Virus record (IMG/VR): IMGVR_UViG_3300030085_002431
Span: 186,614-250,613 of that record
Strand: one strand, 5' to 3'
Length of the DNA stretch: 64,000 bases
Both the position numbers and the translations under genes were made by a program. Positions 1,176-62,453 of this stretch are shown here, in pieces. How positions within the stretch are numbered: position 1 is the first letter of the stretch; each line of letters begins with the position of its first letter. The notes below the pieces were generated by a model. It had not been told where the DNA came from, ran no database searches, and saw only the letters and a list, made by a program, of their open reading frames with translations.

Positions 1176-2093
1176 ATGCCTGCACTAGCCTCTATTTCAA
1201 CAATTGGTGATAAACTAATTGTCGGACAAGTTGATACTTCATTTTTGACTGCTACTGGTAGAGTTACACCAGGAACAGCAGTTCTAAATGGACCTGTTTA
1301 TATTGGTGCATCTCCTCAAATTGGTGTTGCTAGAGCAGCATGTATGATTGGTCCTCCTCTTCCTGGACTGTCAGTTCCTGCTTCACTTGAAGTTACAGGA
1401 GTTGCAAATGTCATTGGTGTTTTCAATGTCATAGCTGTTAGTACATTTACTGGTCTCACAACAAAACTTGGAACAACAATTAAGAATGCTCTAAGTCTTA
1501 AGAATGGTGTTGACCTGAAAAATGCTGTCAATATTGGTAATGGTGTTTCTATTGATAACGCAAAAGCAGTTGTAAATGGTGCAGAGACTGTTGCTGGTGT
1601 ACTTTCTGCACCAGTTGCTAATATTCCATTGGTTAATGGATATTGTACTGGAAATAAATCAATTGGTTCTTTTGATATTCCTCATTGGAGAAAAGAAAAT
1701 ACTAGAATTCGTCATATAGTTGCTGAGGGACCAGAACCAGGGATATATGTCCGTGGACGTTTAACAGGAAACAATACAATTGAATTGCCAGAATATTGGG
1801 ATGGTCTTGTTGACCCAGAATCAATCACCGTAACTCTTACACCTATTGGTTCTTCTCAAGATTTATTTGTTGATTCAATCCCTTGGGGAAGAAAGGTTAT
1901 AATTAAATCTGGAAATGCATCTAATATTGATTGCTTTTATGAAGTTTGGGTAGCACGTTGGTTAGATCCAAGAGACCATAGCAAGAAACTCCATGTAACT
2001 TATGAAGGAAAAACACCAGATGATTACCCAGGTGATGCCAAAGATTTCTTGGTTGGTGGATGGGACTATGACAGAAGAGAGTCTCAATGGTGA
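1176..2093 (+). CDS. Virion/tail protein with conserved C-terminal FDIPH..EGPE..LPEYW domain
   Basis: 305 aa; C-terminal motif is common in phage tail-fibre/spike proteins. Confidence 0.55.
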   Translation: MPALASISTIGDKLIVGQVDTSFLTATGRVTPGTAVLNGPVYIGASPQIGVARAACMIGPPLPGLSVPASLEVTGVANVIGVFNVIAVSTFTGLTTKLGTTIKNALSLKNGVDLKNAVNIGNGVSIDNAKAVVNGAETVAGVLSAPVANIPLVNGYCTGNKSIGSFDIPHWRKENTRIRHIVAEGPEPGIYVRGRLTGNNTIELPEYWDGLVDPESITVTLTPIGSSQDLFVDSIPWGRKVIIKSGNASNIDCFYEVWVARWLDPRDHSKKLHVTYEGKTPDDYPGDAKDFLVGGWDYDRRESQW

Positions 2094-2132
2094 CCTATAA
2101 ATAATTTGAACATATTATCTTAATCTATATTC

Positions 2133-3854
2133 ATGTCCACGACACAAGATATTGTTAATGAGCTGAAAGAAGAACTTGAGTCTAAAATCAAGCAACGTGA
2201 AGGTTGCCTAGACCAACTAAAGTTGGTTGACGTGACTTTGGACAAAATGGATAAAATAATTAAAAGAATTGATAGAGATGCACAAAGTCATATTGATGCA
2301 TTAAATCCATATCTTACTGCAGTTGCGGATGCATATAAAGCAAGAGTTGATGCTGGTTGTAGAAGTAATCTTGAATGGGTAGTTGTAAGTGAGGAGACTA
2401 GACGTTCAAAAGCATTCGTCAGTGATAGAGAGATAACAGTATGGGAGTGTAAAGAAATTGAAAGCCTTGCGAGGCAAGAAAATTATCATGGAATGAAGTA
2501 CTACTCCAAACCATCAGATATAGATTATGGTTCATCTATAATTGGTGAGTTTTTTGGTTTGGTTTCTGCTGGTTCTACAGTCTTAGGAATTCATACCAGC
2601 TCTTTTGAAGCAGCTAATGCTGATGTTCTTGATTATGTCAATGGTATCGAAATTGGTCATGCCATTATTGATGATATTGAAAATCCAGAATTTTTCGATG
2701 CACAAGATATTCCAGTTGTTACTGGATTTGGGTTTACAGACTTTGTTGGTATTGTAACAACTCTTACTGGTGGTATTGATGCAGGCAGCAATGTTTTTAG
2801 ACATTTTGGTGCTGGAATTACTACTGACGTGGTAAATTTGTTTAATGCAGGAGAAAGAATTGGTTTAAATGAACCGTTTGTGTCTGGAAATACAAATCCA
2901 GCAGATGTTTTTGCAGTTGGTTTTGCTACTGTTGTTGGATTTGGAACTTCGACTCAAATAATAGAATTTCAGGATCAATTTGGTATTCCACGACAGGATG
3001 AATTTGATATTCAAACTTTAATATTGTCGGAAAACGCAACGCAAGCTGTTGCTGAGCAAGAATTTACTGTTGGTATTCTGACTTCTATCGGATGTTATTT
3101 CCTCGATACTGCGGCAAAGAAGACATCAGGAATCACTTCATTCTTTGCTATTAGGCAAGATGAAGACTTAGATGCTTCATTTGATTCTACGGCAAATCCA
3201 CATAGCCCAGTAAAAATTGGAATTATAAAAGGTGGTAAGATGGGTGTAGGACATAGTGTATTCTATGTTAAAAATGGTGACCCATTTAAACAGGAAAAAT
3301 GGAGACCAGAGACTGCACATGATGAGATTAAAATTAAAAAAGGAAAAGATATTCCTGCAGTTAAAGAACCAAAAGTTGGTGCAGGAAATGCTCCATATAA
3401 CGAAGGAAACTTCCAATGGCCAGTAAAGATTGAAACAGAAGAGGATGGAGGAAGTGGTCGTGGATGGAATTATGTTGACACTACATATGCTACGAAGGGG
3501 CAGCAGGTAATTATCAGCAGTGAAGATGTTGGAGCAGGAAGTAGTTCTGGTTCATCTGTTGGAGTTGGGTATCTGGCAACAAGTGCTCAAAATCCATCAT
3601 CGTCAACTTGTTCTGCTCTCGATGATGCTATTTCGCAAGCAGAAGCAGCAAGAGATAATGCCGTTGCTATTCATGAACCACTTGCTCGGGGAATTATGGC
3701 ATTATCAGCAACATTAAGAGAAAATAGAGCAGGGAAGCAGATGCTTGCTTGGTCACTTCTTCAAGCATCTAGGTCTTTACGTGATGATATTGAAAAATTG
3801 ACAAAACAAGTTGCGAGTTTACAAAATACTGATTTATCTAAGTATGACGAGTGA
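2133..3854 (+). CDS. Virion structural protein with coiled-coil ends
   Basis: 573 aa; TATAAATA late promoter just upstream (~2096-2103). Confidence 0.55.
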   Translation: MSTTQDIVNELKEELESKIKQREGCLDQLKLVDVTLDKMDKIIKRIDRDAQSHIDALNPYLTAVADAYKARVDAGCRSNLEWVVVSEETRRSKAFVSDREITVWECKEIESLARQENYHGMKYYSKPSDIDYGSSIIGEFFGLVSAGSTVLGIHTSSFEAANADVLDYVNGIEIGHAIIDDIENPEFFDAQDIPVVTGFGFTDFVGIVTTLTGGIDAGSNVFRHFGAGITTDVVNLFNAGERIGLNEPFVSGNTNPADVFAVGFATVVGFGTSTQIIEFQDQFGIPRQDEFDIQTLILSENATQAVAEQEFTVGILTSIGCYFLDTAAKKTSGITSFFAIRQDEDLDASFDSTANPHSPVKIGIIKGGKMGVGHSVFYVKNGDPFKQEKWRPETAHDEIKIKKGKDIPAVKEPKVGAGNAPYNEGNFQWPVKIETEEDGGSGRGWNYVDTTYATKGQQVIISSEDVGAGSSSGSSVGVGYLATSAQNPSSSTCSALDDAISQAEAARDNAVAIHEPLARGIMALSATLRENRAGKQMLAWSLLQASRSLRDDIEKLTKQVASLQNTDLSKYDE

Positions 3855-3910: not shown

Positions 3911-6900
3911 ATGGCGGACAGATATCCCTTAGTAGCCAACTCTTCCACAAATAGGATAGAAGAGTTAGCAATAAATGATAATTTAAATCTAAACAACAAC
4001 GGAATTGTTGGTGCGTCTACAGTACGGGCAAGTAGTTTTATTGGTGACTTAGTTGGTACTGCAACAACTTCCACGCAATTAACAAGTGCTTCTAATATTT
4101 TAGATGGCATTCTGCCTACAGACAGATTAAGTGGTAATTATAATATTGGTGTATCGACAGCAGATACTCTAACAAATGCTGCAAATATTTTAAGTGGAAC
4201 TGTCCCTAGGGGTAGATTGGATGGTGAATATGATATTGATATAACAGGAACTGCTTCAACTGCAGGTGCATTATCCAATGCTTCAGCAATTAGTGGTGGT
4301 ACAATTCCAGCATCTGTACTATCTGGTACTTACAACATTGATATTTCTGGTACGGCATATCGTTCAGTTGGTGCTGCATTATCAATTACTGTTCAAAATC
4401 AAACTGATAATCAGAATCAATACGTTCTTTTTGCTAAACATACAAATACTGATGCTAGTGCGTTCGTAAATCCAGGTGGACTTACATATAATCCAGGACA
4501 AAACTACCTAGGCATTAATACAAGTTTACCAGAGTTTGAACTAGATGTTCTTGGTGATATTAGAGCATCTGGAATCAGTAGTTCAAATGTTTCTTTTGCA
4601 AACACTGCAACTATTGGTTCACTTAAAGGACTGACTGCTATTGATTCAACCAGTATCAGTACGATTCAAGTATCACTTGGTCTTGACCAGTTAAATGACC
4701 TGACTGTTATTGGTATTAGTACATTTGAGACTCTCATAGTTCAAAACCAAACGACACTTAATGATTTAAATGCAACTGGTGTCTCTACTATTGCAAATGC
4801 AAATATAACAGAACTGACGGCAGGAAACTCCAACATTGGAATTGCTACTGCCACAGAACTCAGTGTAGGAATTGGAACTACGGCACAGACAGTAGTTAGT
4901 AGTACAAGAGAATTACAAAATATTGTTGGTGTTGATACTGTAACTTCACAAACTCTCCGTGATAATCTAGGTCTAACTCAATTAGACAGCATTAATGTTA
5001 CGGGTCTCAGTACATTTGCGGATATTGATGCAGATGAAGTAGGTGTCTCAACATTAACTGCAGGAACAGTAAATGCTACAACCTACTTAGGTAATGGTGC
5101 TGCACTTGCTGGAATCGTTACTCAAATCACCGCAGGGATTGGAGTTACACTATCACCATCTAATGGTGTAGGAAACGTACAAATCAATGCTTACAGACCA
5201 GTTGGCAAGACAATCTTTGTTGCTAAGTCTGGTGATGACAATAATACTGGATTGACTGATAGTCATCCAAAACTAACAATTAAAGCTGCTGCAGCAGTTG
5301 CAGAAGCAGGTGATACTATTAAAGTATATCCTGGTCTTTATCAAGAAGCAAACCCAATTGTACTTAATAAGTTCGTTGCTGTTGAGGGTCTAGAACTAAG
5401 AAACTGCCAGGTAAGTGCATCAAATTCTGCTTTAGATCTCTTCCATGTTAATAATGGTTGCCATATTACTGACCTAAGTTTTGTTGGTCCTGATGCAACA
5501 GGTGGTGCTGCTGCTGTAGCATTCAACCCACTATCGGGTGTTTCTTCTGACAGATTCTTTGATGGTGCAAGACTCATCCGAATGAATCTGGATTACATTG
5601 CCCGTGAAGCAGTTGGTTTCCTTACCAGTACAGATTATCTAGACCCACCATTTGAAGTAACACCAGGTGGTCCAACTGATTGTGCTGATGATATCAAAGA
5701 TGTCTTCAGAGCAGTGATGTTTGATATCACTAGAGGAGGAAACTCTAAGTGTGTTGGTGCTGGTAAGTCATACTTCTCTGAAGCAGGAGCACTTCTTCAC
5801 GTTACTGGAACAGATGCAAATGGATATAGTGTAAAGGATGCAACGATTGCAGCAATGAATAAGGCTGTTGGAATTGCATTTTCTTGTATTACTAATGTTT
5901 CTTGGACTGGTGGATATCAAAATGAATTCTATCAAGTAAAAGACGTTGGAATTTACGCAGACTCTGCAACTGGTTCTAACCAAGACTTTGGTTCATGTGC
6001 AAATGTTAAATCTGCAATCAATACTTGCGTAGGTATTGTTACAACAATCATTGGTGCTGGAACTACTGGAAACATTAACGCAGGAATCAATACAACATAT
6101 CCTGGTAACAATGGTCAAGGTGCTCCAACCGAAAATCATTCTTCATTCTCCCCTGGTGTTGGTCCAATTACTCAAGGTCCATACATCAGAAACTGCACAA
6201 ACTTTATCGGTAACAGCATTGGTCTAAAGGTTGATGGTTTCAATGCAGAACCAGGAGACCTAGATGATATTGGTGTTACTGGTTCAATGTCAGTTGACTC
6301 CTACACTCAATTTAATCAAGGTGGCATTGGTGTTTCAGTTTCTAATGGTGCATATGCTCAGTTAGTTTCACTATTCACTATTTGCAATGAAGAAGCAGTT
6401 GTTTCAACTTCTGGTGGTCAACTCGACTTAACAAACTCCAACTCTTCTTTTGGAACTAAAGGTCTTGTTTCTAGAGGTGTTGGAAATAATGGAACTAAGT
6501 CAATTTATACATTAACTGGTGTAGGACAAACAGAAGCACTGGCAAGACAAAATGAAGTTGTTGTTTCTGGAGTAGGAACATTTAGACCATATGATGGTCA
6601 AGTCTTATACTTTGACCAACTATATCAGTCCGTCCAGGAAATTAGAGTGTTAGATGCAGGTAACAATTATACCACTGCACCTAGAGTTACTATTGATGCA
6701 CCAGTAGGACAGAATGGAATTACGGCACAAGCAACTGCAACCGTAGAGAATGGAAGAATTGCAAGCATAACAGTTATTACTGCTGGTTCTCAATACGATA
6801 CAACTCCAAGTGTTACTGTCGAAGGACCAGTTGGTGGTGGTGTAACCGCAACTGCAGAAGTAGCAGTAATGTCACCAATTTATTATAGAGTTACTGAAGC

Positions 6901-43233: not shown

Positions 43234-43689
43234 ATGAAAATAGAAGTAGAAGGTTCTCCTGTTCTCAGAAAGAAATCAAAAAGAGTTTCAAATATAAACA
43301 ACGATATCCGAAAGTTTTGTGCTGAGATGGCACAGACAATGAGAGATGCAAAGGGTATTGGAATTTCAGCACCCCAGGTGGGGGTATCTAAACGCATCAT
43401 AATTGTTAATGATGGAGGAAATGATTGGGTATTGATTAACCCAGAAATTATTTGGGATGATGGTAAAAGAGTTTCTTTTAATGAGGGTTGTTTAAGTGTT
43501 CCTGGTGAATATGCAGATATTCTCAGACCAGACAGGATTAGGGTGAAATATAGAGAACTATCTGGGAGACCTCAGACTGTAGACTTAGACGGTTTATTGT
43601 CAAGGATAGTGCAACATGAAATTGACCACTTAAATGGCATTCTTTTCACAGATTACTTGACTGATAGAGGAAGTGCGATTACTATATAA
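43234..43689 (+). CDS. def: Peptide deformylase
   Basis: GIGISAPQVG, EGCLSVP, QHEIDHLNG; start moved past tRNA-Ala. Confidence 0.95.
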   Translation: MKIEVEGSPVLRKKSKRVSNINNDIRKFCAEMAQTMRDAKGIGISAPQVGVSKRIIIVNDGGNDWVLINPEIIWDDGKRVSFNEGCLSVPGEYADILRPDRIRVKYRELSGRPQTVDLDGLLSRIVQHEIDHLNGILFTDYLTDRGSAITI

Positions 43690-43691
43690 AG

Positions 43692-43930
43692 TGTTCAAGA
43701 GGTTGCGAAGTCTGTTGTTTTGGACAGGGGTTCGATTCCCCTCACCTCCATTCATGGGGGTGCCATGGTTTCGACAGGGCAAAAAGGTCGTAATTGTTGA
43801 CGGGACATAAACATAGATGCAAACACATCTGAAACCGCAGCAAATAACATTGTTGCATTCTCCCGCAGCACCGTTGCTGCCTGAATGGGGGATGGGGGAT
43901 AAGTCTTCCTTCTAATCCAATAGACTCTTG
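43692..43930 (+). ncRNA. ssrA: Circularly permuted (two-piece) tmRNA
   Basis: T-arm/acceptor 3' half (43722-43750) precedes 5' half GGGGGTG (43756); G3-U70 and A73; tag (A)ANNIVAFSRSTVAA* ending 43884; TTGACT-17-TACTAT promoter. Confidence 0.9.
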
Positions 43931-43952
43931 GGGGTGAGATGCCCCTCTTTTT
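43930..43952 (+). terminator. Terminator after tmRNA
   Basis: GGGGGT-GAGAT-GCCCCT hairpin followed by a U-tract. Confidence 0.6.
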
Positions 43953-51580: not shown

Positions 51581-51639
51581 TACCCTGCCCATTGCCGTGG
51601 GTGGGGTGCTATATTTGTTTCACAAACGAGGTCAAACGA

Positions 51640-52875
51640 TTGTTCACACTTCTCCCCTACCAGCAACGTGCCCTCGATGCAGTGCAAACTAATCGCAAGG
51701 GTTCTGTATTTGTTCCTACTGGTGGTGGCAAAACTGTTATCATGATGGAAGATGCAAAGCAACGTATTGCACGGGCATCTAAACCCCTCACCTTCCTGAT
51801 TGTTGCTCCTCGCATTCTCCTCGCAAACCAACTTTGTGGTGAGTTTGAAGAGTACCTAGATAATAAAGATATTCACTATATGCACTGCCATAGTGGAGAA
51901 ACTCACCACTTCAAGAGTACAAATCCAGAACTCATCAAACTGTTTGCAAATACTGCAAAAGTTGGTGGTGAGCATTGCTTCATTTTTACTACCTACAATT
52001 CTATTCATAAAGTCAATGATTCAAAGATTGACGTTGATGTTGTTTACTTTGACGAAGCACATCACTGCGTCAAGAAAAACAACTTTGTGGGTATTGCTCA
52101 GACTAGTGCAGACGCAAATAATTCTTATTTCTTTACTGCTACTCCTAAGTATCATGGTGGAGTTGAATCCATGAACAATACCTCTGTTTATGGTAACAAC
52201 ATCATCTCTATTCCTGCTCAAGAATTGATTGATGCAGGTAGCATTATTCCCCCTAAAGTTGTATCCTATGAATCACAAGACACCCGCAGTCGTGAAAATG
52301 CTGCGTGGGTCGATGGTAAGAATGTCATTGGCATTTTGCGTGGGATTACTGACACCGATGCTCCTAAAGTTCTTGTTGCATCTCCAAGCAGCAAGTGCAT
52401 CTGGGAAATGTTCACTGAAACCGATGTTCTTATTCAACTGAAAGACATGGGTTACACCATCATGCACATCACATCTAAGCATGGTGCTTACATCGACAAA
52501 ACCAAAGTTTCCCGTGAAGTATTCTTTGAGAAGATGTCTGAGTTCGGTGCTGACCCTGATAAAAAGTTCATTGTCTTCCACTATTCTATTCTGTCCGAAG
52601 GTATGAACGTGCATGGTCTGACTCATTGCATCATGCTCCGCAATCTTCCTGTGATTGAGATGGCACAGACTGTCGGTCGTGTTATCCGTATGCACCGAGA
52701 TGACCGCAAAGCAATCGCAGAAGGTAAAATGAAAGCAGGTGAGTTTGCTTTCTATAAGAAACCCTGTGGTCACGTTGTTATTCCTACCAACAACAACTAT
52801 GGAGACCGTATCATCAAGCAACTGCAAAACGTTGTTGATACTATCTTTGTCAAGGGTGAAGTTCCGATTGCATAA
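51640..52875 (+). CDS. SF2 DEAH-box helicase (type III Res-like)
   Basis: PTGGGKT, DEAHH, TAT, QTVGRVIR; TTG start after GAGG. Confidence 0.88.
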   Translation: MFTLLPYQQRALDAVQTNRKGSVFVPTGGGKTVIMMEDAKQRIARASKPLTFLIVAPRILLANQLCGEFEEYLDNKDIHYMHCHSGETHHFKSTNPELIKLFANTAKVGGEHCFIFTTYNSIHKVNDSKIDVDVVYFDEAHHCVKKNNFVGIAQTSADANNSYFFTATPKYHGGVESMNNTSVYGNNIISIPAQELIDAGSIIPPKVVSYESQDTRSRENAAWVDGKNVIGILRGITDTDAPKVLVASPSSKCIWEMFTETDVLIQLKDMGYTIMHITSKHGAYIDKTKVSREVFFEKMSEFGADPDKKFIVFHYSILSEGMNVHGLTHCIMLRNLPVIEMAQTVGRVIRMHRDDRKAIAEGKMKAGEFAFYKKPCGHVVIPTNNNYGDRIIKQLQNVVDTIFVKGEVPIA

Positions 52876-58208: not shown

Positions 58209-58889
58209 ATGGACCGCAAGCAAGTCATCGAAAAGATTCAAGCAATCCTGAAACTTCAGGAAGGTACGACTTTCGATGGTGAAGCAGATAATGCTGCTAA
58301 GATGATTGATATGCTGTGCAAAAAGTACGGTGTAACTATCGACGAAGCAACCGAAGTTCAGGTTGAAGATGAGATTTTCCTGAAGTTCAAGAAAATCAAT
58401 GTTGCTTATGCAACTCTTCTCAATGCGATTGCATATTTCTATGATGCAAAAGCATATCTCAAAACCGATGTGAATGGAAACAAAACCATTCAAGTTATTG
58501 GTTCTGAGGCACAACAGATTCAAGTGCGAATCTATTTCGATTATCTTGTAGATTGCATGGAGAAAGAAACTGAAACTGCACACAAAGCAGAGAAGATTAT
58601 TGCTCAACTTCAGGGTAATAAACTCTCTCGCAGTTTCAAAACTAACTTCCGCAAAGGTTTTGCTGAGCAAGTTATGAACCGTCTGCAAGATAAGAAGAAA
58701 CAAGAGGGTCGAGTTCATGAGCACAAAGCAGTGACCGATAAGGCACTCTCAACCCGTCGATTTAACACTTCTCGACGTATGAATGGTGCGAGTGGTTACG
58801 GTGGCAATGCTGGGGCATCTGCGGGTGGTTCAGTGTCACTTAACCGTCAGGCATCAGGTGCTTCACAAAAGCAAATTGTTGGGGTATAA
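58209..58889 (+). CDS. DUF2786-family protein
   Basis: IEKIQ.IL.L......EA..A......L..KYG N-terminus; F..GF; Gly-rich tail. Confidence 0.7.
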   Translation: MDRKQVIEKIQAILKLQEGTTFDGEADNAAKMIDMLCKKYGVTIDEATEVQVEDEIFLKFKKINVAYATLLNAIAYFYDAKAYLKTDVNGNKTIQVIGSEAQQIQVRIYFDYLVDCMEKETETAHKAEKIIAQLQGNKLSRSFKTNFRKGFAEQVMNRLQDKKKQEGRVHEHKAVTDKALSTRRFNTSRRMNGASGYGGNAGASAGGSVSLNRQASGASQKQIVGV

Positions 58890-58915: not shown

Positions 58916-59407
58916 ATGAATCAAGAAATTAAAGTCTATGATGATTTTCTGAGTAAAGAAGATCATGATAGACTTGTTCATTTATTTTCTGGATTAGGTG
59001 AGTATTCTAAATTCCCATGGGAATGTGTGGATAATGATAGACCAAATCTAATTAAATTTACTCATGATTTTTGGTCTCATGGTCCGATGGGTAATTATAG
59101 TGAATGGATTGGACCTCTTACATATGCGTTAGATATTAAATCTTTAGTGTTTGCTTTTGCTTCCTTATATCCAAAAGGTAGTGAACTTGTTGAATTTGAT
59201 TATCATGTAGATATTGATTTTGCATGTACGACTTGTGTGTATTATGTAAACACATGCGATGGATATACTAAATTTGAAGATTGTGGAACTGTGGTAGATA
59301 GTGTTGCCAATAGATGTTTAGTTTTTCCGAGTCAATTAAGGCACACAGGTACAAATGTGACTGATACTAATAAACGGTTAATCATCAATATGAATTTCTT
59401 CAACTAA
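58916..59407 (+). CDS. 2OG-Fe(II) oxygenase
   Basis: YHVD, YYVNTCDG.T.F, SVANR...F....H.G, R..IN.N. Confidence 0.82.
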   Translation: MNQEIKVYDDFLSKEDHDRLVHLFSGLGEYSKFPWECVDNDRPNLIKFTHDFWSHGPMGNYSEWIGPLTYALDIKSLVFAFASLYPKGSELVEFDYHVDIDFACTTCVYYVNTCDGYTKFEDCGTVVDSVANRCLVFPSQLRHTGTNVTDTNKRLIINMNFFN

Positions 59408-60494: not shown

Positions 60495-60767
60495 ATGCTT
60501 AAGGCAATTACATCACTATTACTATCAGTTACCTTATGGGTACAAGTTCCACAATGGAATGATGATTGGAGTAATTGTGCAGTAGATGTTCCTGACACTA
60601 GTTGTCATTGGTACATTGTAAATGCCGATAATACTTTTGGTGAAGGATTCGATTGGGAAACTGCACCATGGTATTCGATTGAAGGATTACAAGACATTGC
60701 TAATCTTCATGATGAGGTAATTAGTAATGGTCACACTTATACAGTTGAAGCATTACAAAATCAATGA
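60495..60767 (+). CDS. Conserved secreted/membrane-anchored small protein
   Basis: Signal-like N-terminus; Trp-rich CAVDVPD..CHWY. Confidence 0.6.
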   Translation: MLKAITSLLLSVTLWVQVPQWNDDWSNCAVDVPDTSCHWYIVNADNTFGEGFDWETAPWYSIEGLQDIANLHDEVISNGHTYTVEALQNQ

Positions 60768-61069: not shown

Positions 61070-62080
61070 AAAGTGCATCTGTGGAAAAACTTGTGGAAAA
61101 ACAATCATTAAATAAATGGTTAAAAAAACATAGTTGCGTGTTTTATGTTTTCCACAGAAGGTGTTGAAAAAGTATATAAATACCCTGTTTTATCTTCGTT
61201 ATTATGTTCTAAACCCCTCTGGTTATTGTTATCTAAGACCGCAGTATATCATGAGTTGACAAAAAAGTCAAGAAAATTTCTGAAACTTTTTGAGTCTCAC
61301 ACATATTATTCGTCTGATATAAGACTCAACAAAACTGTAAGATTTTATGAGTCCTCTGAGTCTCACTGATTCGTCCATTCTTATGCGAAACTCACTGGTC
61401 TCAGAGAACTTATGAGTCTCAGACCACTCGAAAATTCGTCCACTGGACACAGTAGTCTCATTGTTTTGCGTGTAGACTACTAGGGTGGTTTTGAGGGAGG
61501 GAAGTATTACACAGCACTATGTGATAATAATTACACAGTGAGTTTGTATTAGTTTTCCACAGGCAAAGTATTAGTTATCCACAGACCCTGTGGAAAAGTA
61601 TTATAAACCTGTGGAAAACTTTATACCTGGGGGAGGGGTTTATATTACTAATACACAGTGAGTTTCTGATTGTTTATAAACACCAGTACTACTCACAAAC
61701 ACTCCGAGGGTTTCTAATACTTTACAGATTGCCCTTCGTGTATTATAATAAAACAGTGTTGTGTAATTATAATTAAGTAGTACTGTTTAATTCTTATACC
61801 CACGGGGGGGTTATTAATAACAATTACTTAGTGAGTTCGTTATTGTTATTATACAGCACTAAATGACAGTAACCCTCGGGGGGGTTAGGTTTTTTATAAA
61901 AACCGATGGGTCCCCCTAACCTACAAAAGTATGCATCCACGAGACCTTTACCCCGCATATAAAAATTTTTCCGAGGGGAAAAACGGGTCTCCGAGGTCCG
62001 TTCAAGAAAAAAAATTCCGAGGGGAAAAAATAGGTTAAAAACCCTGTGAGTGCTATATAACGGAGAATAAAAATTTCTAA
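61070..62080. other. Putative replication origin with seven DnaA boxes
   Basis: ~1 kb without a credible gene; TT(T/A)TCCACA at 61080, 61092, 61148, 61553, 61575, 61589, 61610; AT-rich tract. Confidence 0.6.
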
Positions 62081-62453
62081 GAATGACCGAAGAAGAGAAG
62101 GAGTTACTCATCGAGTGCATTCAATTCCGTTTACAGCACGACAAGTCTTTAAATAGTAATGAAGTATTACGTGAAGATTTGGAAGAATTGCTCTTTAAAG
62201 TAGAGGATATTGATGACTACGTATGACATAAAAGTCAAAGGTTTAACAGTAATGGAGAGAGTTACTCCAGAGCAACTCACACAGAGTATGAAAGATGCTC
62301 AAATGATTGTGTGGTTGAGAGGGGGTAAAATGGAAGACGTTGAGTATGTAATAAATACAAAGTCTTCTTGAGACGAAAAAAAACCCCGTCCGCAACGTAG
62401 TTGCATTTGATGTGAAGGGGTGATATAATTATAGAGTTGGAATTTACATTTTT

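Follow-up and report, generated by a model that had tools for sequence, protein, structure and literature searches.

Clustered, helically phased host-type DnaA boxes in a conserved non-coding region of T4-like cyanophages

A large marine T4-like cyanophage carries seven perfect matches to the box recognized by the replication initiator DnaA of its host, arranged in two clusters within a conserved non-coding control region. Many relatives possess similar arrays phased with the DNA helix, and these lytic phages therefore probably engage host DnaA, although this is inferred from sequence alone and the role of the sites is a matter of hypothesis. The analyzed sequence (hereafter the window) has a length of 64 kb and is identical to the last 64 kb of the 250,613-bp viral contig IMGVR_UViG_3300030085_002431. 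A sequence-only reading of the window had described six TTTTCCACA boxes and one TTATCCACA box in an otherwise gene-free stretch followed by an AT-rich tract, and had interpreted the region as oriC-like, with the phage either recruiting host DnaA to its origin or titrating it away from the host chromosome. The observation proved to be correct, whereas the interpretation was only partly supported: the boxes are very likely host-type DnaA sites under selection, but the designation as oriC-like is not supported. No earlier report of such arrays was found, as no paper in the literature searched links cyanophages with DnaA boxes, and the claims of an oriC in other phages are Ori-Finder outputs based on loose boxes.

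The box clusters and their surroundings

All six copies of TTTTCCACA in the window lie within a span of 540 bp (Table 1), whereas Markov models of order 1–5 predict 0.8–1.6 copies for the whole window on both strands. For the degenerate motif TTWTCCACA, none of 100 dinucleotide shuffles reached the observed number of 9. The arrangement of the second cluster as two forward boxes followed by two reverse boxes was also confirmed. Two minor corrections to the sequence-only reading are required. First, TTATCCACA occurs two more times, at 59026 (-) and 59565 (+), in both cases inside coding ORFs. Second, the stretch 61070–62082 is not free of mechanical ORFs (60–98 aa), but none of these has support, and the coding gap is one of only two gaps longer than 300 bp in a crude gene call. 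The AT-rich tract is real and belongs to the least stable ~0.1% of 40–60-nt segments, but it coincides with a near-consensus promoter and with the 5′ stem of a candidate structured transcript that ends at a terminator-like hairpin. No Rfam family matched the intergenic region, either at E ≤ 1 beyond noise or at the gathering score.

Table 1. Sequence features of the non-coding region (coordinates refer to the window; L-numbers denote individual loci of relatives, L194 being the nearest distinct relative; promoters and transcripts are predicted).
Position	Strand	Feature	Conservation and remarks
61080–61088, 61092–61100	-	Cluster A, tandem pair of TTTTCCACA boxes, 12 bp apart start to start, 3-bp gap	Kept exactly in L194; same tandem pair next to the same palindrome in L014, L026, L152, S-H38 and S-RIM32; a spacing of 11–12 bp is the main tandem class across loci
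61103–61133	.	A-rich palindromic element (hairpin arms AATCATT..AATGGTT, then AAATGGTTAAAAAAACAT), immediately next to the tandem boxes	Next to boxes in more than 20 loci and in S-WAM1, S-RIM32 and S-H38, and in other loci without boxes; arms AGCCATT/AATGGCT in L014, so that pairing is kept
61148–61156	+	Box A3 (TTTTCCACA), facing the tandem pair across the palindrome, 19 bp upstream of TATAAATA	Kept in L194
61175–61182	+	TATAAATA, match to the T4-type late-promoter consensus	Context TATAAATACCCTGTTTT shared with S-WAM1 and L194; function inferred from the T4 consensus only
61243–61271	-	Leftward σ70 promoter with extended -10 (TTGACT, 17 nt, TGa-TATACT; 10/12 match), transcript (predicted start near 61236) directed toward the palindrome and cluster A	TTGACW-17-TGnTAnnnT in 21 distinct loci, spacer exactly 17 nt in 19 of them; start site to palindrome 40–190 nt
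61279–61450	.	Variable spacer with short direct repeats (GAGTCTCA, ATTCGTCC)	Least conserved part of the region; diverged and with about 300 nt of extra repeat block in L194
61553	+	Cluster B (61553–61618), TTTTCCACA; the four boxes of the cluster form two nested convergent pairs, as imperfect inverted repeats (13-nt perfect arms; 16-nt arms)	All four boxes kept in L194; segment found by BLAST in distant relatives and in P-SSM7
61575	+	Cluster B, TTATCCACA	TTTTCCACA in L194, the only change in the cluster
61589	-	Cluster B, TTTTCCACA	Kept in L194
61610	-	Cluster B, TTTTCCACA	Kept in L194
61721–61749	+	Near-consensus σ70 promoter, TTTACA-17-TATAAT (11/12 match)	Identical in L194
61739–61800	.	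AT-rich tract, 120 bp from cluster B	
61756–61898	+	Candidate ~143-nt structured transcript starting in the AT-rich tract and ending at a hairpin plus T-run (61870–61897)	MFE -39 kcal/mol, z = -2.9
61895–62066	+	Upstream region of the next genes with two TTCCGAGGGGAAAAA repeats and a TGcTATATA extended -10 (62051–62059) before the ATG at 62083	Element shared with S-CAM9, ACG-2014, S-CAM4 and S-WAM2

Conservation, arrangement and likely reader of the boxes

Comparison with related phages, one of the checks proposed beforehand, indicated that the boxes are under selection. In L194 62 of 63 box bases are identical as compared to 862 of 988 non-box bases (Fisher p = 0.002), so that the boxes are conserved in position while substitutions accumulate beside them. 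BLAST matches to distant relatives fall almost exclusively on the two clusters. In 79 loci of relatives that were not chosen by box content, the 9-mer is 5-fold enriched (54 copies against 11 expected), with 51 of the 54 copies in clusters, in 10 loci. The cultured phages S-WAM1, S-H38, S-RIM32, P-SSM7, and Syn9 possess 2–5 boxes in the syntenic gap.

Several lines of evidence suggest that these sites are read by DnaA. The motif TTTTCCACA is the phylum-wide cyanobacterial DnaA box (PMC3531139, PMC4674748, PMC4009838), although it is not specific to cyanobacteria: a scan of a genome collection returned convergent TTTTCCACA pairs from many bacterial phyla, the only marine Synechococcus hit (L223) being a 2-box site beside ruvC and not oriC, and a 7-box locus of Cyanaurora being followed by a GCS2-like gene rather than dnaN. 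The extended consensus AG-box-GG, derived from 458 contexts, equals the flanks of the boxes R1 and R4 of E. coli oriC. Box spacing is periodic at 10.9 bp (R = 0.79, p ~1e-21, calculated on distinct spacer clusters; none of 2000 uniform null sets reached this value), and the gaps in tandem pairs are 2–3 bp, as is reported for DnaA arrays of oriC (Rozgaja et al., 2011). A phage-encoded DnaA-like reader was not found, since no PF08299 domain was detected among the 94 ORFs of the window and no DnaA homolog in any Synechococcus or Prochlorococcus phage record. It remains conceivable that some other phage or host protein recognizes TGTGGAAAA, or that the sites are selfish or compositional repeats without DnaA involvement, as the DnaA assignment rests on sequence, the region holds several other repeat families without assigned function, and many contigs (38 of 96) break near the clusters, as repeats and hypervariable DNA cause. 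However, this is very unlikely given that the match to the host box is exact at 9 of 9 positions, that the only tolerated variant is the canonical W at position 3, that the flanks match E. coli R1 and R4, that the enrichment is not explained by composition, and that the same grammar appears in an unrelated viral contig mixing TTATCCACA and TTTTCCACA.

Convergent pairs are the most common arrangement, also in loci not selected for it. This raises the possibility of a single-strand loading site resembling the A-site of the ABC primosome, in which convergent pairs of the unwound region fold into hairpins whose stems contain a double-stranded box, so that bound DnaA nucleates helicase or primase loading for lagging-strand synthesis. 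An A-site hairpin with a DnaA box is reported to be a priming signal in plasmids (Masai and Arai), and the inverted repeats of cluster B would be compatible with such folding (outer pair, 13-nt perfect arms; inner pair, 16-nt arms). This reading is nevertheless improbable, because complementarity rarely extends beyond the box and its consensus flanks, loops would be 4–70 nt, tandem pairs cannot form such hairpins, the 10.9-bp phasing is more naturally a property of binding to duplex DNA, and cyanobacteria are not known to possess DnaC.

Origin features and comparison with known systems

Although the cluster of host-type consensus boxes and a tandem pair 3 bp apart next to A/T-rich DNA resemble the basal unwinding system (BUS) of bacterial oriC (PMC8287927), neither an enrichment of DnaA-trios nor a GC-skew switch was found. 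Across 502 box contexts, runs of at least three DnaA-trios (NAN repeats within 0–16 bp of a box) occurred in 36–44% on the unwinding side and proper strand, as compared to 41–45% on control sides; in the window individual boxes reach runs of 2–5, but the longest runs lie over neighboring boxes. The BUS model was therefore rejected. An A-rich palindrome lies 3–15 bp from cluster A, but box orientation relative to the A/T-rich element is usually the reverse of that in oriC and, like box number and side relative to the palindrome, is not conserved. The proposed AT-rich unwinding tract is better explained as a promoter plus a structured transcript. No GC-skew switch was detected, as skew stays positive on both sides of the locus and cumulative skew in the complete Syn9 genome rises monotonically across its box site, but this test is weak where all genes are co-oriented and replication is largely recombination-driven, and it was uninformative in Syn9 because nearly all genes are co-oriented. 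Six of 13 relatives that retain the promoter-palindrome module have no boxes, and the boxes thus cannot be an indispensable origin core.

In contrast, the context of the boxes shows some resemblance to transcription-activated origins. The leftward extended -10 promoter is aimed at the A/T-rich palindrome, with boxes at a distance of 5–15 bp from the latter, and all seven clusters in loci where the module is detectable lie within 700 bp of it. A ‘ctaag...ctatca’ element initially considered as a conserved hairpin is better read as the -10/-35 of this promoter, because its stems do not align between loci. The second promoter is followed directly by one of the least stable duplex segments of the window (61750–61800). 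The T4 R-loop origins oriF (uvsY) and oriG (ori34) belong to the same phage lineage and share the architecture of a promoter followed by an A/T-rich segment, which in the window is only putatively easily unwound, so that the similarity here exists at the sequence level only. They use MotA-dependent middle promoters and no DnaA, whereas cyanomyoviruses are not known to encode MotA, the promoters found here are of the host σ70 type, and DnaA boxes are attached. The U-rich transcript over the palindrome would form a weak RNA-DNA hybrid, which is unfavorable for an R-loop primer. A classical sRNA with a GC-rich intrinsic terminator was also rejected as a reading of the leftward transcript, as only weak A/U hairpins are present at the palindrome.

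Among replicons that use host DnaA, the P1 plasmid origin oriR and the iteron-plasmid origins of pSC101, RK2, and F likewise carry clusters of consensus boxes at one or both ends of a repeat-rich non-coding origin, with flexible box number and orientation, and DnaA assists there without being the initiator of the element itself (review: PMC4980987). These origins have iterons and an adjacent rep gene, whereas no Rep-like Pfam family was found among the 94 window ORFs, and the flanking ORFs encode small hypothetical proteins and a 250-aa protein whose homologs are annotated as glycosyltransferase in some phage records. As regards the criterion of at least three well-conserved 17–22-bp iterons, repeat families do exist (ACACAGTGAGTT in three copies, GAGTCTCA and ATTCGTCC in three to four), but the repeats are short, of 65–80% identity, and poorly conserved in L194; TTCGTTATA repeats follow the boxes in the loci L010, L019, L024, and L028. 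The carrier, moreover, is a 250-kb lytic T4-like phage with its own replisome. In phage lambda host DnaA acts through promoter-proximal boxes, and transcription near the origin is needed for initiation (PMC3985674; Wegrzyn work cited in PMC8477408), but lambda has its own initiator O, iterons, and only a few weak boxes, whereas the window contains seven perfect phased boxes and no evident O-like protein. Finally, datA of E. coli and the DnaA-box clusters (DBCs) of B. subtilis consist of about 5–8 high-affinity boxes outside an origin, a size and density similar to those of the phage arrays, and regulate the DnaA pool (PMC3245932, PMC5742627). They are chromosomal and serve the cell's own cycle, and datA needs IHF; a phage-borne version would be hostile or parasitic.

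Possible roles of the arrays and their meaning for cyanophage biology

The number, position, conservation, and periodic spacing of the boxes were established by the sequence comparisons, whereas promoter activity, DnaA binding, duplex opening, and any effect on replication or transcription are inferred. That the sites are DnaA-binding arrays is considered likely (about 0.85). Sequence alone cannot separate recruitment to an origin from titration, and DnaA-controlled transcription is an equally open third option, but the tentatively preferred reading (about 0.4) is DnaA-assisted, transcription-activated initiation of phage replication. The boxes are an accessory part of a control hub that T4-like cyanophages keep just upstream of the baseplate gene block, built around the predicted strong leftward promoter and the palindrome, and lineages gain and lose them, always close to the palindrome or within the same gap and always spaced by whole helical turns so that bound DnaA molecules can touch each other. 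In the preferred reading, early in infection host RNA polymerase would transcribe through the A/T-rich element while a cooperative DnaA array assembles beside it, and together they would open or hold open the duplex, allowing the phage loader and helicase (gp59/gp41 homologs) to start the first replication forks. This would be an origin of the T4 oriF/oriG or lambda kind, assisted by DnaA as in P1 or plasmid origins. As DnaA level and ATP form track the host cell cycle and light period, the arrangement would also tie phage replication to host state; in Prochlorococcus, dnaA expression is diel and precedes S phase (PMC2921402). Besides the lack of DnaA-trio enrichment and of a GC-skew switch described above, the dispensability of the boxes in some lineages argues against this model, as does the fact that T4-like phages carry a full replisome and recombination-dependent replication and that T4 itself is not known to need DnaA.

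Two alternative roles are regarded as less likely. The array might be a datA-like or DBC-like sink that, as phage genomes multiply, removes DnaA from host oriC or promotes hydrolysis of its ATP, so that new rounds of host chromosome replication stop and nucleotides are freed for the phage. Multiple perfect-consensus, predicted high-affinity boxes at helical-turn spacing, the absence of enriched DnaA-trios, and the free variation and dispensability expected for a dosage device are consistent with this possibility, and an unrelated 129-kb viral contig carries 20 boxes in 530 bp, far more than an origin needs. However, a single infecting genome adds only seven sites, so any titration would act late, when many cyanomyoviruses have already shut down or degraded host DNA, and a pure sink could sit anywhere, yet every cluster in a locus where the promoter-palindrome module could be detected lies within 700 bp of it. 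Alternatively, bound DnaA might act as repressor, roadblock, or terminator for the leftward early promoter and/or the TATAAATA late-type promoter, whereby the phage would read host cell-cycle or energy state or stop antisense transcription into the upstream genes. Cluster A lies at about +80 to +156 of the leftward transcript, the T-run of the tandem boxes directly follows the palindrome hairpin on the transcribed strand, and optional boxes would be expected of a modulator. DnaA is a transcription factor (PMC4447404), and in E. coli and B. subtilis it can block elongating RNA polymerase. On the other hand, box position relative to the promoters is not fixed (upstream or downstream of the palindrome, 40–400 nt from the start site), cluster B is 140–200 bp upstream of the nearest rightward promoter, and seven to eight phased sites are more than operators usually need.

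[quoted passage not shown]

T4-like cyanophages kill a sizeable share of the ocean's main primary producers, and their replication depends on light. They are not known to have the MotA-dependent origin promoters of T4, and the only earlier idea on how they start replicating was a single origin inferred from GC skew in Syn9 (PMC2984593). A conserved, phased array of putative host DnaA sites offers a concrete, testable handle on this question, as it defines where to look for initiation and which host protein to deplete, and cultured phages can be compared as natural variants, with arrays in S-RIM32, S-WAM1, S-H38, and P-SSM7, a minimal pair in Syn9, and none in other relatives. The arrays also provide a large natural data set on how the spacing and flanks of DnaA boxes are selected. 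Lytic phages with complete replisomes may thus still plug into the master cell-cycle regulator of the host, and if the arrays turn out to be sinks or transcriptional switches instead, they would still be a new phage strategy aimed at DnaA.

The boxes and their genomic context

Inspection of the sequence between window positions 60700 and 62500 and a search for TTWTCCACA on both strands confirmed the observation made in the sequence-only reading, which had described six copies of TTTTCCACA and one of TTATCCACA in a gene-free stretch, and the boxes lie exactly where they had been placed (see table). These are all six TTTTCCACA copies in the 64 kb, whereas Markov models of order 1-5 predict 0.8-1.6 copies in the whole window, and no dinucleotide shuffle reached the observed count of TTWTCCACA. 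Two further TTATCCACA copies were found in coding DNA. The box-bearing stretch contains only short ORFs without support, and all real neighboring genes are on the + strand.

The window, which is base for base the last 64 kb of the 250,613-bp contig IMGVR_UViG_3300030085_002431, belongs to a T4-like cyanomyovirus. Its flanking genes match Synechococcus and Prochlorococcus phages only, and it carries 10 tRNA genes as well as typical cyanophage genes such as 2OG-Fe(II) oxygenases (at least six), transaldolase, and peptide deformylase. A cyanobacterial-type permuted tmRNA (Rfam RF01851, 133.6 bits; ARAGORN tag peptide ANTSETAANNIVAFSRSTVAA) is encoded among the tRNA genes. In addition, the window encodes two Dam-class DNA methyltransferases, HNH endonucleases, a ResIII/DEAD helicase, and, 2 kb upstream of the box region, a 226-aa protein with DUF2786 and DUF7168 domains. 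The same intergenic sequence was assembled from two other metagenomes (loci L001 and L146).

Coordinates of the features in the window and in the viral and cyanobacterial loci used for comparison
Sequence	Position	Strand	Feature
Window	11471-47854		Range over which the 10 tRNA genes are spread
Window	43661-43945	+	Permuted tmRNA
Window	51592-52875		ResIII/DEAD helicase
Window	58209-58889	+	226-aa protein with DUF2786 and DUF7168 domains
Window	59026		TTATCCACA in coding DNA
Window	59565		TTATCCACA in coding DNA
Window	61070-62082		Stretch with only unsupported short ORFs
Window	61080	-	TTTTCCACA box, tandem pair
Window	61092	-	TTTTCCACA box, tandem pair (both boxes of the pair, 61080-61100)
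Window	61103-61133		A-rich palindrome, AAATGGTTAAAAAAACAT
Window	61148	+	TTTTCCACA box A3
Window	61175		TATAAATA, T4 late-promoter consensus
Window	61243-61271	-	Leftward σ70 promoter with extended -10
Window	61300-61312		Segment compared with L194:8530-9920
Window	61308, 61370, 61436		ATTCGTC(C) repeats in the spacer
Window	61553	+	TTTTCCACA box, cluster B
Window	61575	+	TTATCCACA box, cluster B
Window	61589	-	TTTTCCACA box, cluster B
Window	61610	-	TTTTCCACA box, cluster B
Window	61721-61749	+	σ70 promoter, TTTACA-17-TATAAT
Window	61721-61898	+	This promoter and the 143-nt folded stretch, candidate small RNA
Window	61895-62066		Conserved upstream region of the next genes
Window	62083		47-aa ORF
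L194	8530-9920	reverse	Region with about 300 nt of extra sequence between the box clusters
L188 (IMGVR_UViG_3300042505_000752)	1814-2348		20 boxes in 530 bp
L268 (Candidatus Cyanaurora vandensis)	6572-6706		Seven TTTTCCACA boxes

Conservation, spacing, and likely reader of the boxes

Several independent lines of sequence evidence indicate that the boxes are functional sites. The nearest distinct relative, locus L194, is about 85% identical over the spacer and keeps all seven boxes in place, with 62 of 63 box bases being identical as compared to 862 of 988 other bases (Fisher p = 0.002). The single change converts TTATCCACA to TTTTCCACA, one canonical form to the other, and substitutions crowd directly against the box edges. 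L194 also carries about 300 nt of extra sequence between the two box clusters, in which the G-rich 'gggtgg..gagggagggaagtattacacagcactatgtgata' block is repeated, so the spacer evolves by duplication of repeat units. In more distant relatives BLAST found only two pieces of the 1-kb spacer, at query positions 10-77 and 480-555, and these are the two box clusters. In 79 loci that were retrieved through the downstream 250-aa gene, and thus were not selected for boxes, TTTTCCACA occurs 54 times against about 11 expected, and 51 of these copies lie in clusters of at least 3, in 10 loci. A pattern scan of the viral collection returned at least 120 hits, most of them low-GC contigs with 4-9 boxes in coding gaps of 1-2 kb. 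Since the box-bearing viral loci were partly selected by a convergent-pair pattern, prevalence was derived only from the 79 unbiased loci. In 38 of 96 low-GC contigs found by the box pattern (L081-L199) the cluster lies within 700 bp of a contig end, and L001 starts inside cluster B. Assemblies tend to break here, which suggests population-level hypervariability or repeats in this region. Among cultured phages, S-WAM1, S-H38, S-RIM32, P-SSM7, and, minimally, Syn9 carry 2-5 boxes in unannotated gaps at the syntenic place, just before the baseplate module.

TTTTCCACA is the DnaA box of the phylum Cyanobacteria, including the predicted Prochlorococcus oriCs next to dnaN (PMC3531139, PMC4674748, PMC4009838). 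Across 458 unique contexts the phage boxes have an extended consensus A-G-TTTTCCACA-G-G, and in the E. coli MG1655 record the two strongest oriC boxes read agAG-TTATCCACA-Gtag (R4) and cttG-TTATCCACA-GGgc (R1). The spacing between neighboring boxes is quantised, with tandem pairs at 11-12 and 21-22 bp and convergent pairs at 13, 23-25, 34-35, 56, 66-67, and 78-79 bp. Because many loci are related, only distinct spacer clusters were counted, and the best period was then 10.9 bp (R = 0.79, p about 1e-21). The search pattern allowed all gaps of 1-30 equally, and none of 2000 uniform nulls came close to this value. Whole-turn spacing with gaps of 2-3 bp is what cooperative DnaA arrays on duplex DNA look like, as in the low-affinity arrays of oriC. 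That the boxes instead form a hairpin loading signal resembling an 'A-site' is considered very unlikely.

No DnaA DNA-binding domain was found among the 94 ORFs of the window, and a tblastn search with E. coli DnaA against 50,697 phage records hit no Synechococcus or Prochlorococcus phage. The reader is therefore most likely the DnaA of the host, and recognition by another protein, or a lack of function, appears very improbable. The motif is not private to cyanobacteria, however, as convergent TTTTCCACA pairs occur in many phyla. An unrelated viral contig of 129 kb and 48% GC (L188) contains 20 mixed TTATCCACA and TTTTCCACA boxes, mostly 11-13 bp apart, with the same spacing and with ag-box-ggg flanks, and this extreme array suggests that DnaA-box arrays are a wider phage feature. 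In the early-branching cyanobacterium Candidatus Cyanaurora vandensis (L268), seven TTTTCCACA boxes lie upstream of a GCS2-like gene and not of dnaN, which may represent an oriC or a DnaA-box cluster displaced from dnaN.

A conserved promoter-palindrome module

The boxes are embedded in a module shared by many cyanomyoviruses. On the + strand of the window, the tandem boxes are followed by the A-rich palindrome, box A3, the TATAAATA late-promoter consensus, and a conserved 'ctaag...ctatca...gtcaa' element. Read on the minus strand, this last element is a near-perfect σ70 promoter with an extended -10 (TTGACW, 17 nt, TGnTAnnnT), which is present in 21 distinct cyanomyovirus loci, with a spacer of exactly 17 nt in 19 of them. 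Besides the window, these include the loci L007, L008, L014, L018, L019, L024, L026, L028, L039, L058, L061, L068, L086, L127, L131, L141, L194, and L200 (S-WAM1). The predicted promoter is directed leftward, and its inferred transcript has a conserved 5' end (AGAYMACAA..AGAGG..TTT), runs antisense to the general gene direction, and reaches the palindrome after 40-190 nt. A role of the boxes in DnaA-controlled transcription, or as a roadblock of the leftward and late promoters, is possible but less likely than the replication role discussed below.

Further to the right lie a variable repeat-rich spacer, cluster B, a near-consensus σ70 promoter, and a 143-nt stretch that folds into a long hairpin and ends in a terminator-like hairpin plus T-run (z = -2.9). 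This stretch is a candidate phage small RNA, which is nearly identical in L194 but was not found in distant relatives. The AT-rich tract noted in the sequence-only reading is real and lies in the least stable ~0.1% of the window, but it is better explained as this promoter and a predicted transcript start. The adjoining upstream region of the next genes contains a segment conserved in S-CAM9, S-8S53/55/56, ACG-2014, S-CAM4, and S-WAM2, which is followed by two TTCCGAGGGGAAAAA repeats (TTTCCGTGGG in S-CAM9) and an extended -10 (TGcTATATA) just before the 47-aa ORF, and which is probably an operator and promoter for the downstream genes. In the relatives L010, L019, L024, and L028, runs of a short repeat, TTCGTTATA (also as TTCGTCATA), follow the box clusters. 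Like the ATTCGTC(C) repeats in the spacer of the window, these may be sites for a second binding protein.

Within this module the boxes are accessory. Among the unbiased loci in which the promoter and palindrome could be recognised, 7 have 4-8 boxes within 700 bp of the module and 6 have none. Relative to the palindrome, the boxes may be arranged as a reverse tandem (window, S-H38, S-RIM32, and L014), as a forward tandem (S-WAM1), or on the other side (the viral loci L086, L141, and L179). This argues for selection on DnaA occupancy near the hub and against a fixed geometry.

Comparison with replication origins and proposed role

The basal unwinding system (BUS) of bacterial origins has been defined as boxes followed by a short spacer and at least 3 NAN trios (PMC8287927). 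Trio runs on the proper side and strand of the boxes, as derived from the E. coli record, were compared with three controls over 502 contexts, and no enrichment was found. GC skew does not switch at the locus, but in the complete Syn9 genome it rises monotonically and thus cannot locate an origin in these co-oriented genomes. No Rep-like gene is adjacent to the boxes. Membership in the oriC/BUS class and in the iteron-origin class therefore fails on these features. At the sequence level only, a promoter directed towards an A/T-rich element, as in the T4-type architecture of a promoter plus an unwinding element, and a box cluster of the datA/DBC type are both present. A DnaA sink or inactivator remains a possible alternative, less likely than a role in replication initiation and about as likely as DnaA-controlled transcription. 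The interpretation given in the sequence-only reading is partly supported, as the boxes are most likely read by host DnaA, but the designation of the region as oriC-like is not supported.

Full-text literature searches revealed no paper linking cyanophages with DnaA boxes. The only earlier statement on cyanomyovirus origins is the single origin proposed for Syn9 on the basis of skew (PMC2984593), and other reports of a phage 'oriC' are Ori-Finder predictions. DnaA boxes on phage and plasmid replicons are already known, whereas their presence as phased arrays in lytic T4-like cyanophages is new.

What the sequence analyses demonstrate is a selected, phased array of host-type DnaA sites beside a conserved early-type promoter and an A/T-rich element. 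Binding of DnaA and any function in replication are inferred, with a probability of about 0.85 that the boxes are a DnaA-binding array and of only about 0.4 that they serve replication initiation. In this view, host DnaA would bind cooperatively and help to open or mark the hub for the first phage replication forks, which would be transcription-activated as in T4 oriF/oriG or lambda and DnaA-assisted as in P1 and plasmid origins. Since Prochlorococcus dnaA is diel and peaks before S phase (PMC2921402), such a link would couple phage replication to the state of the host.
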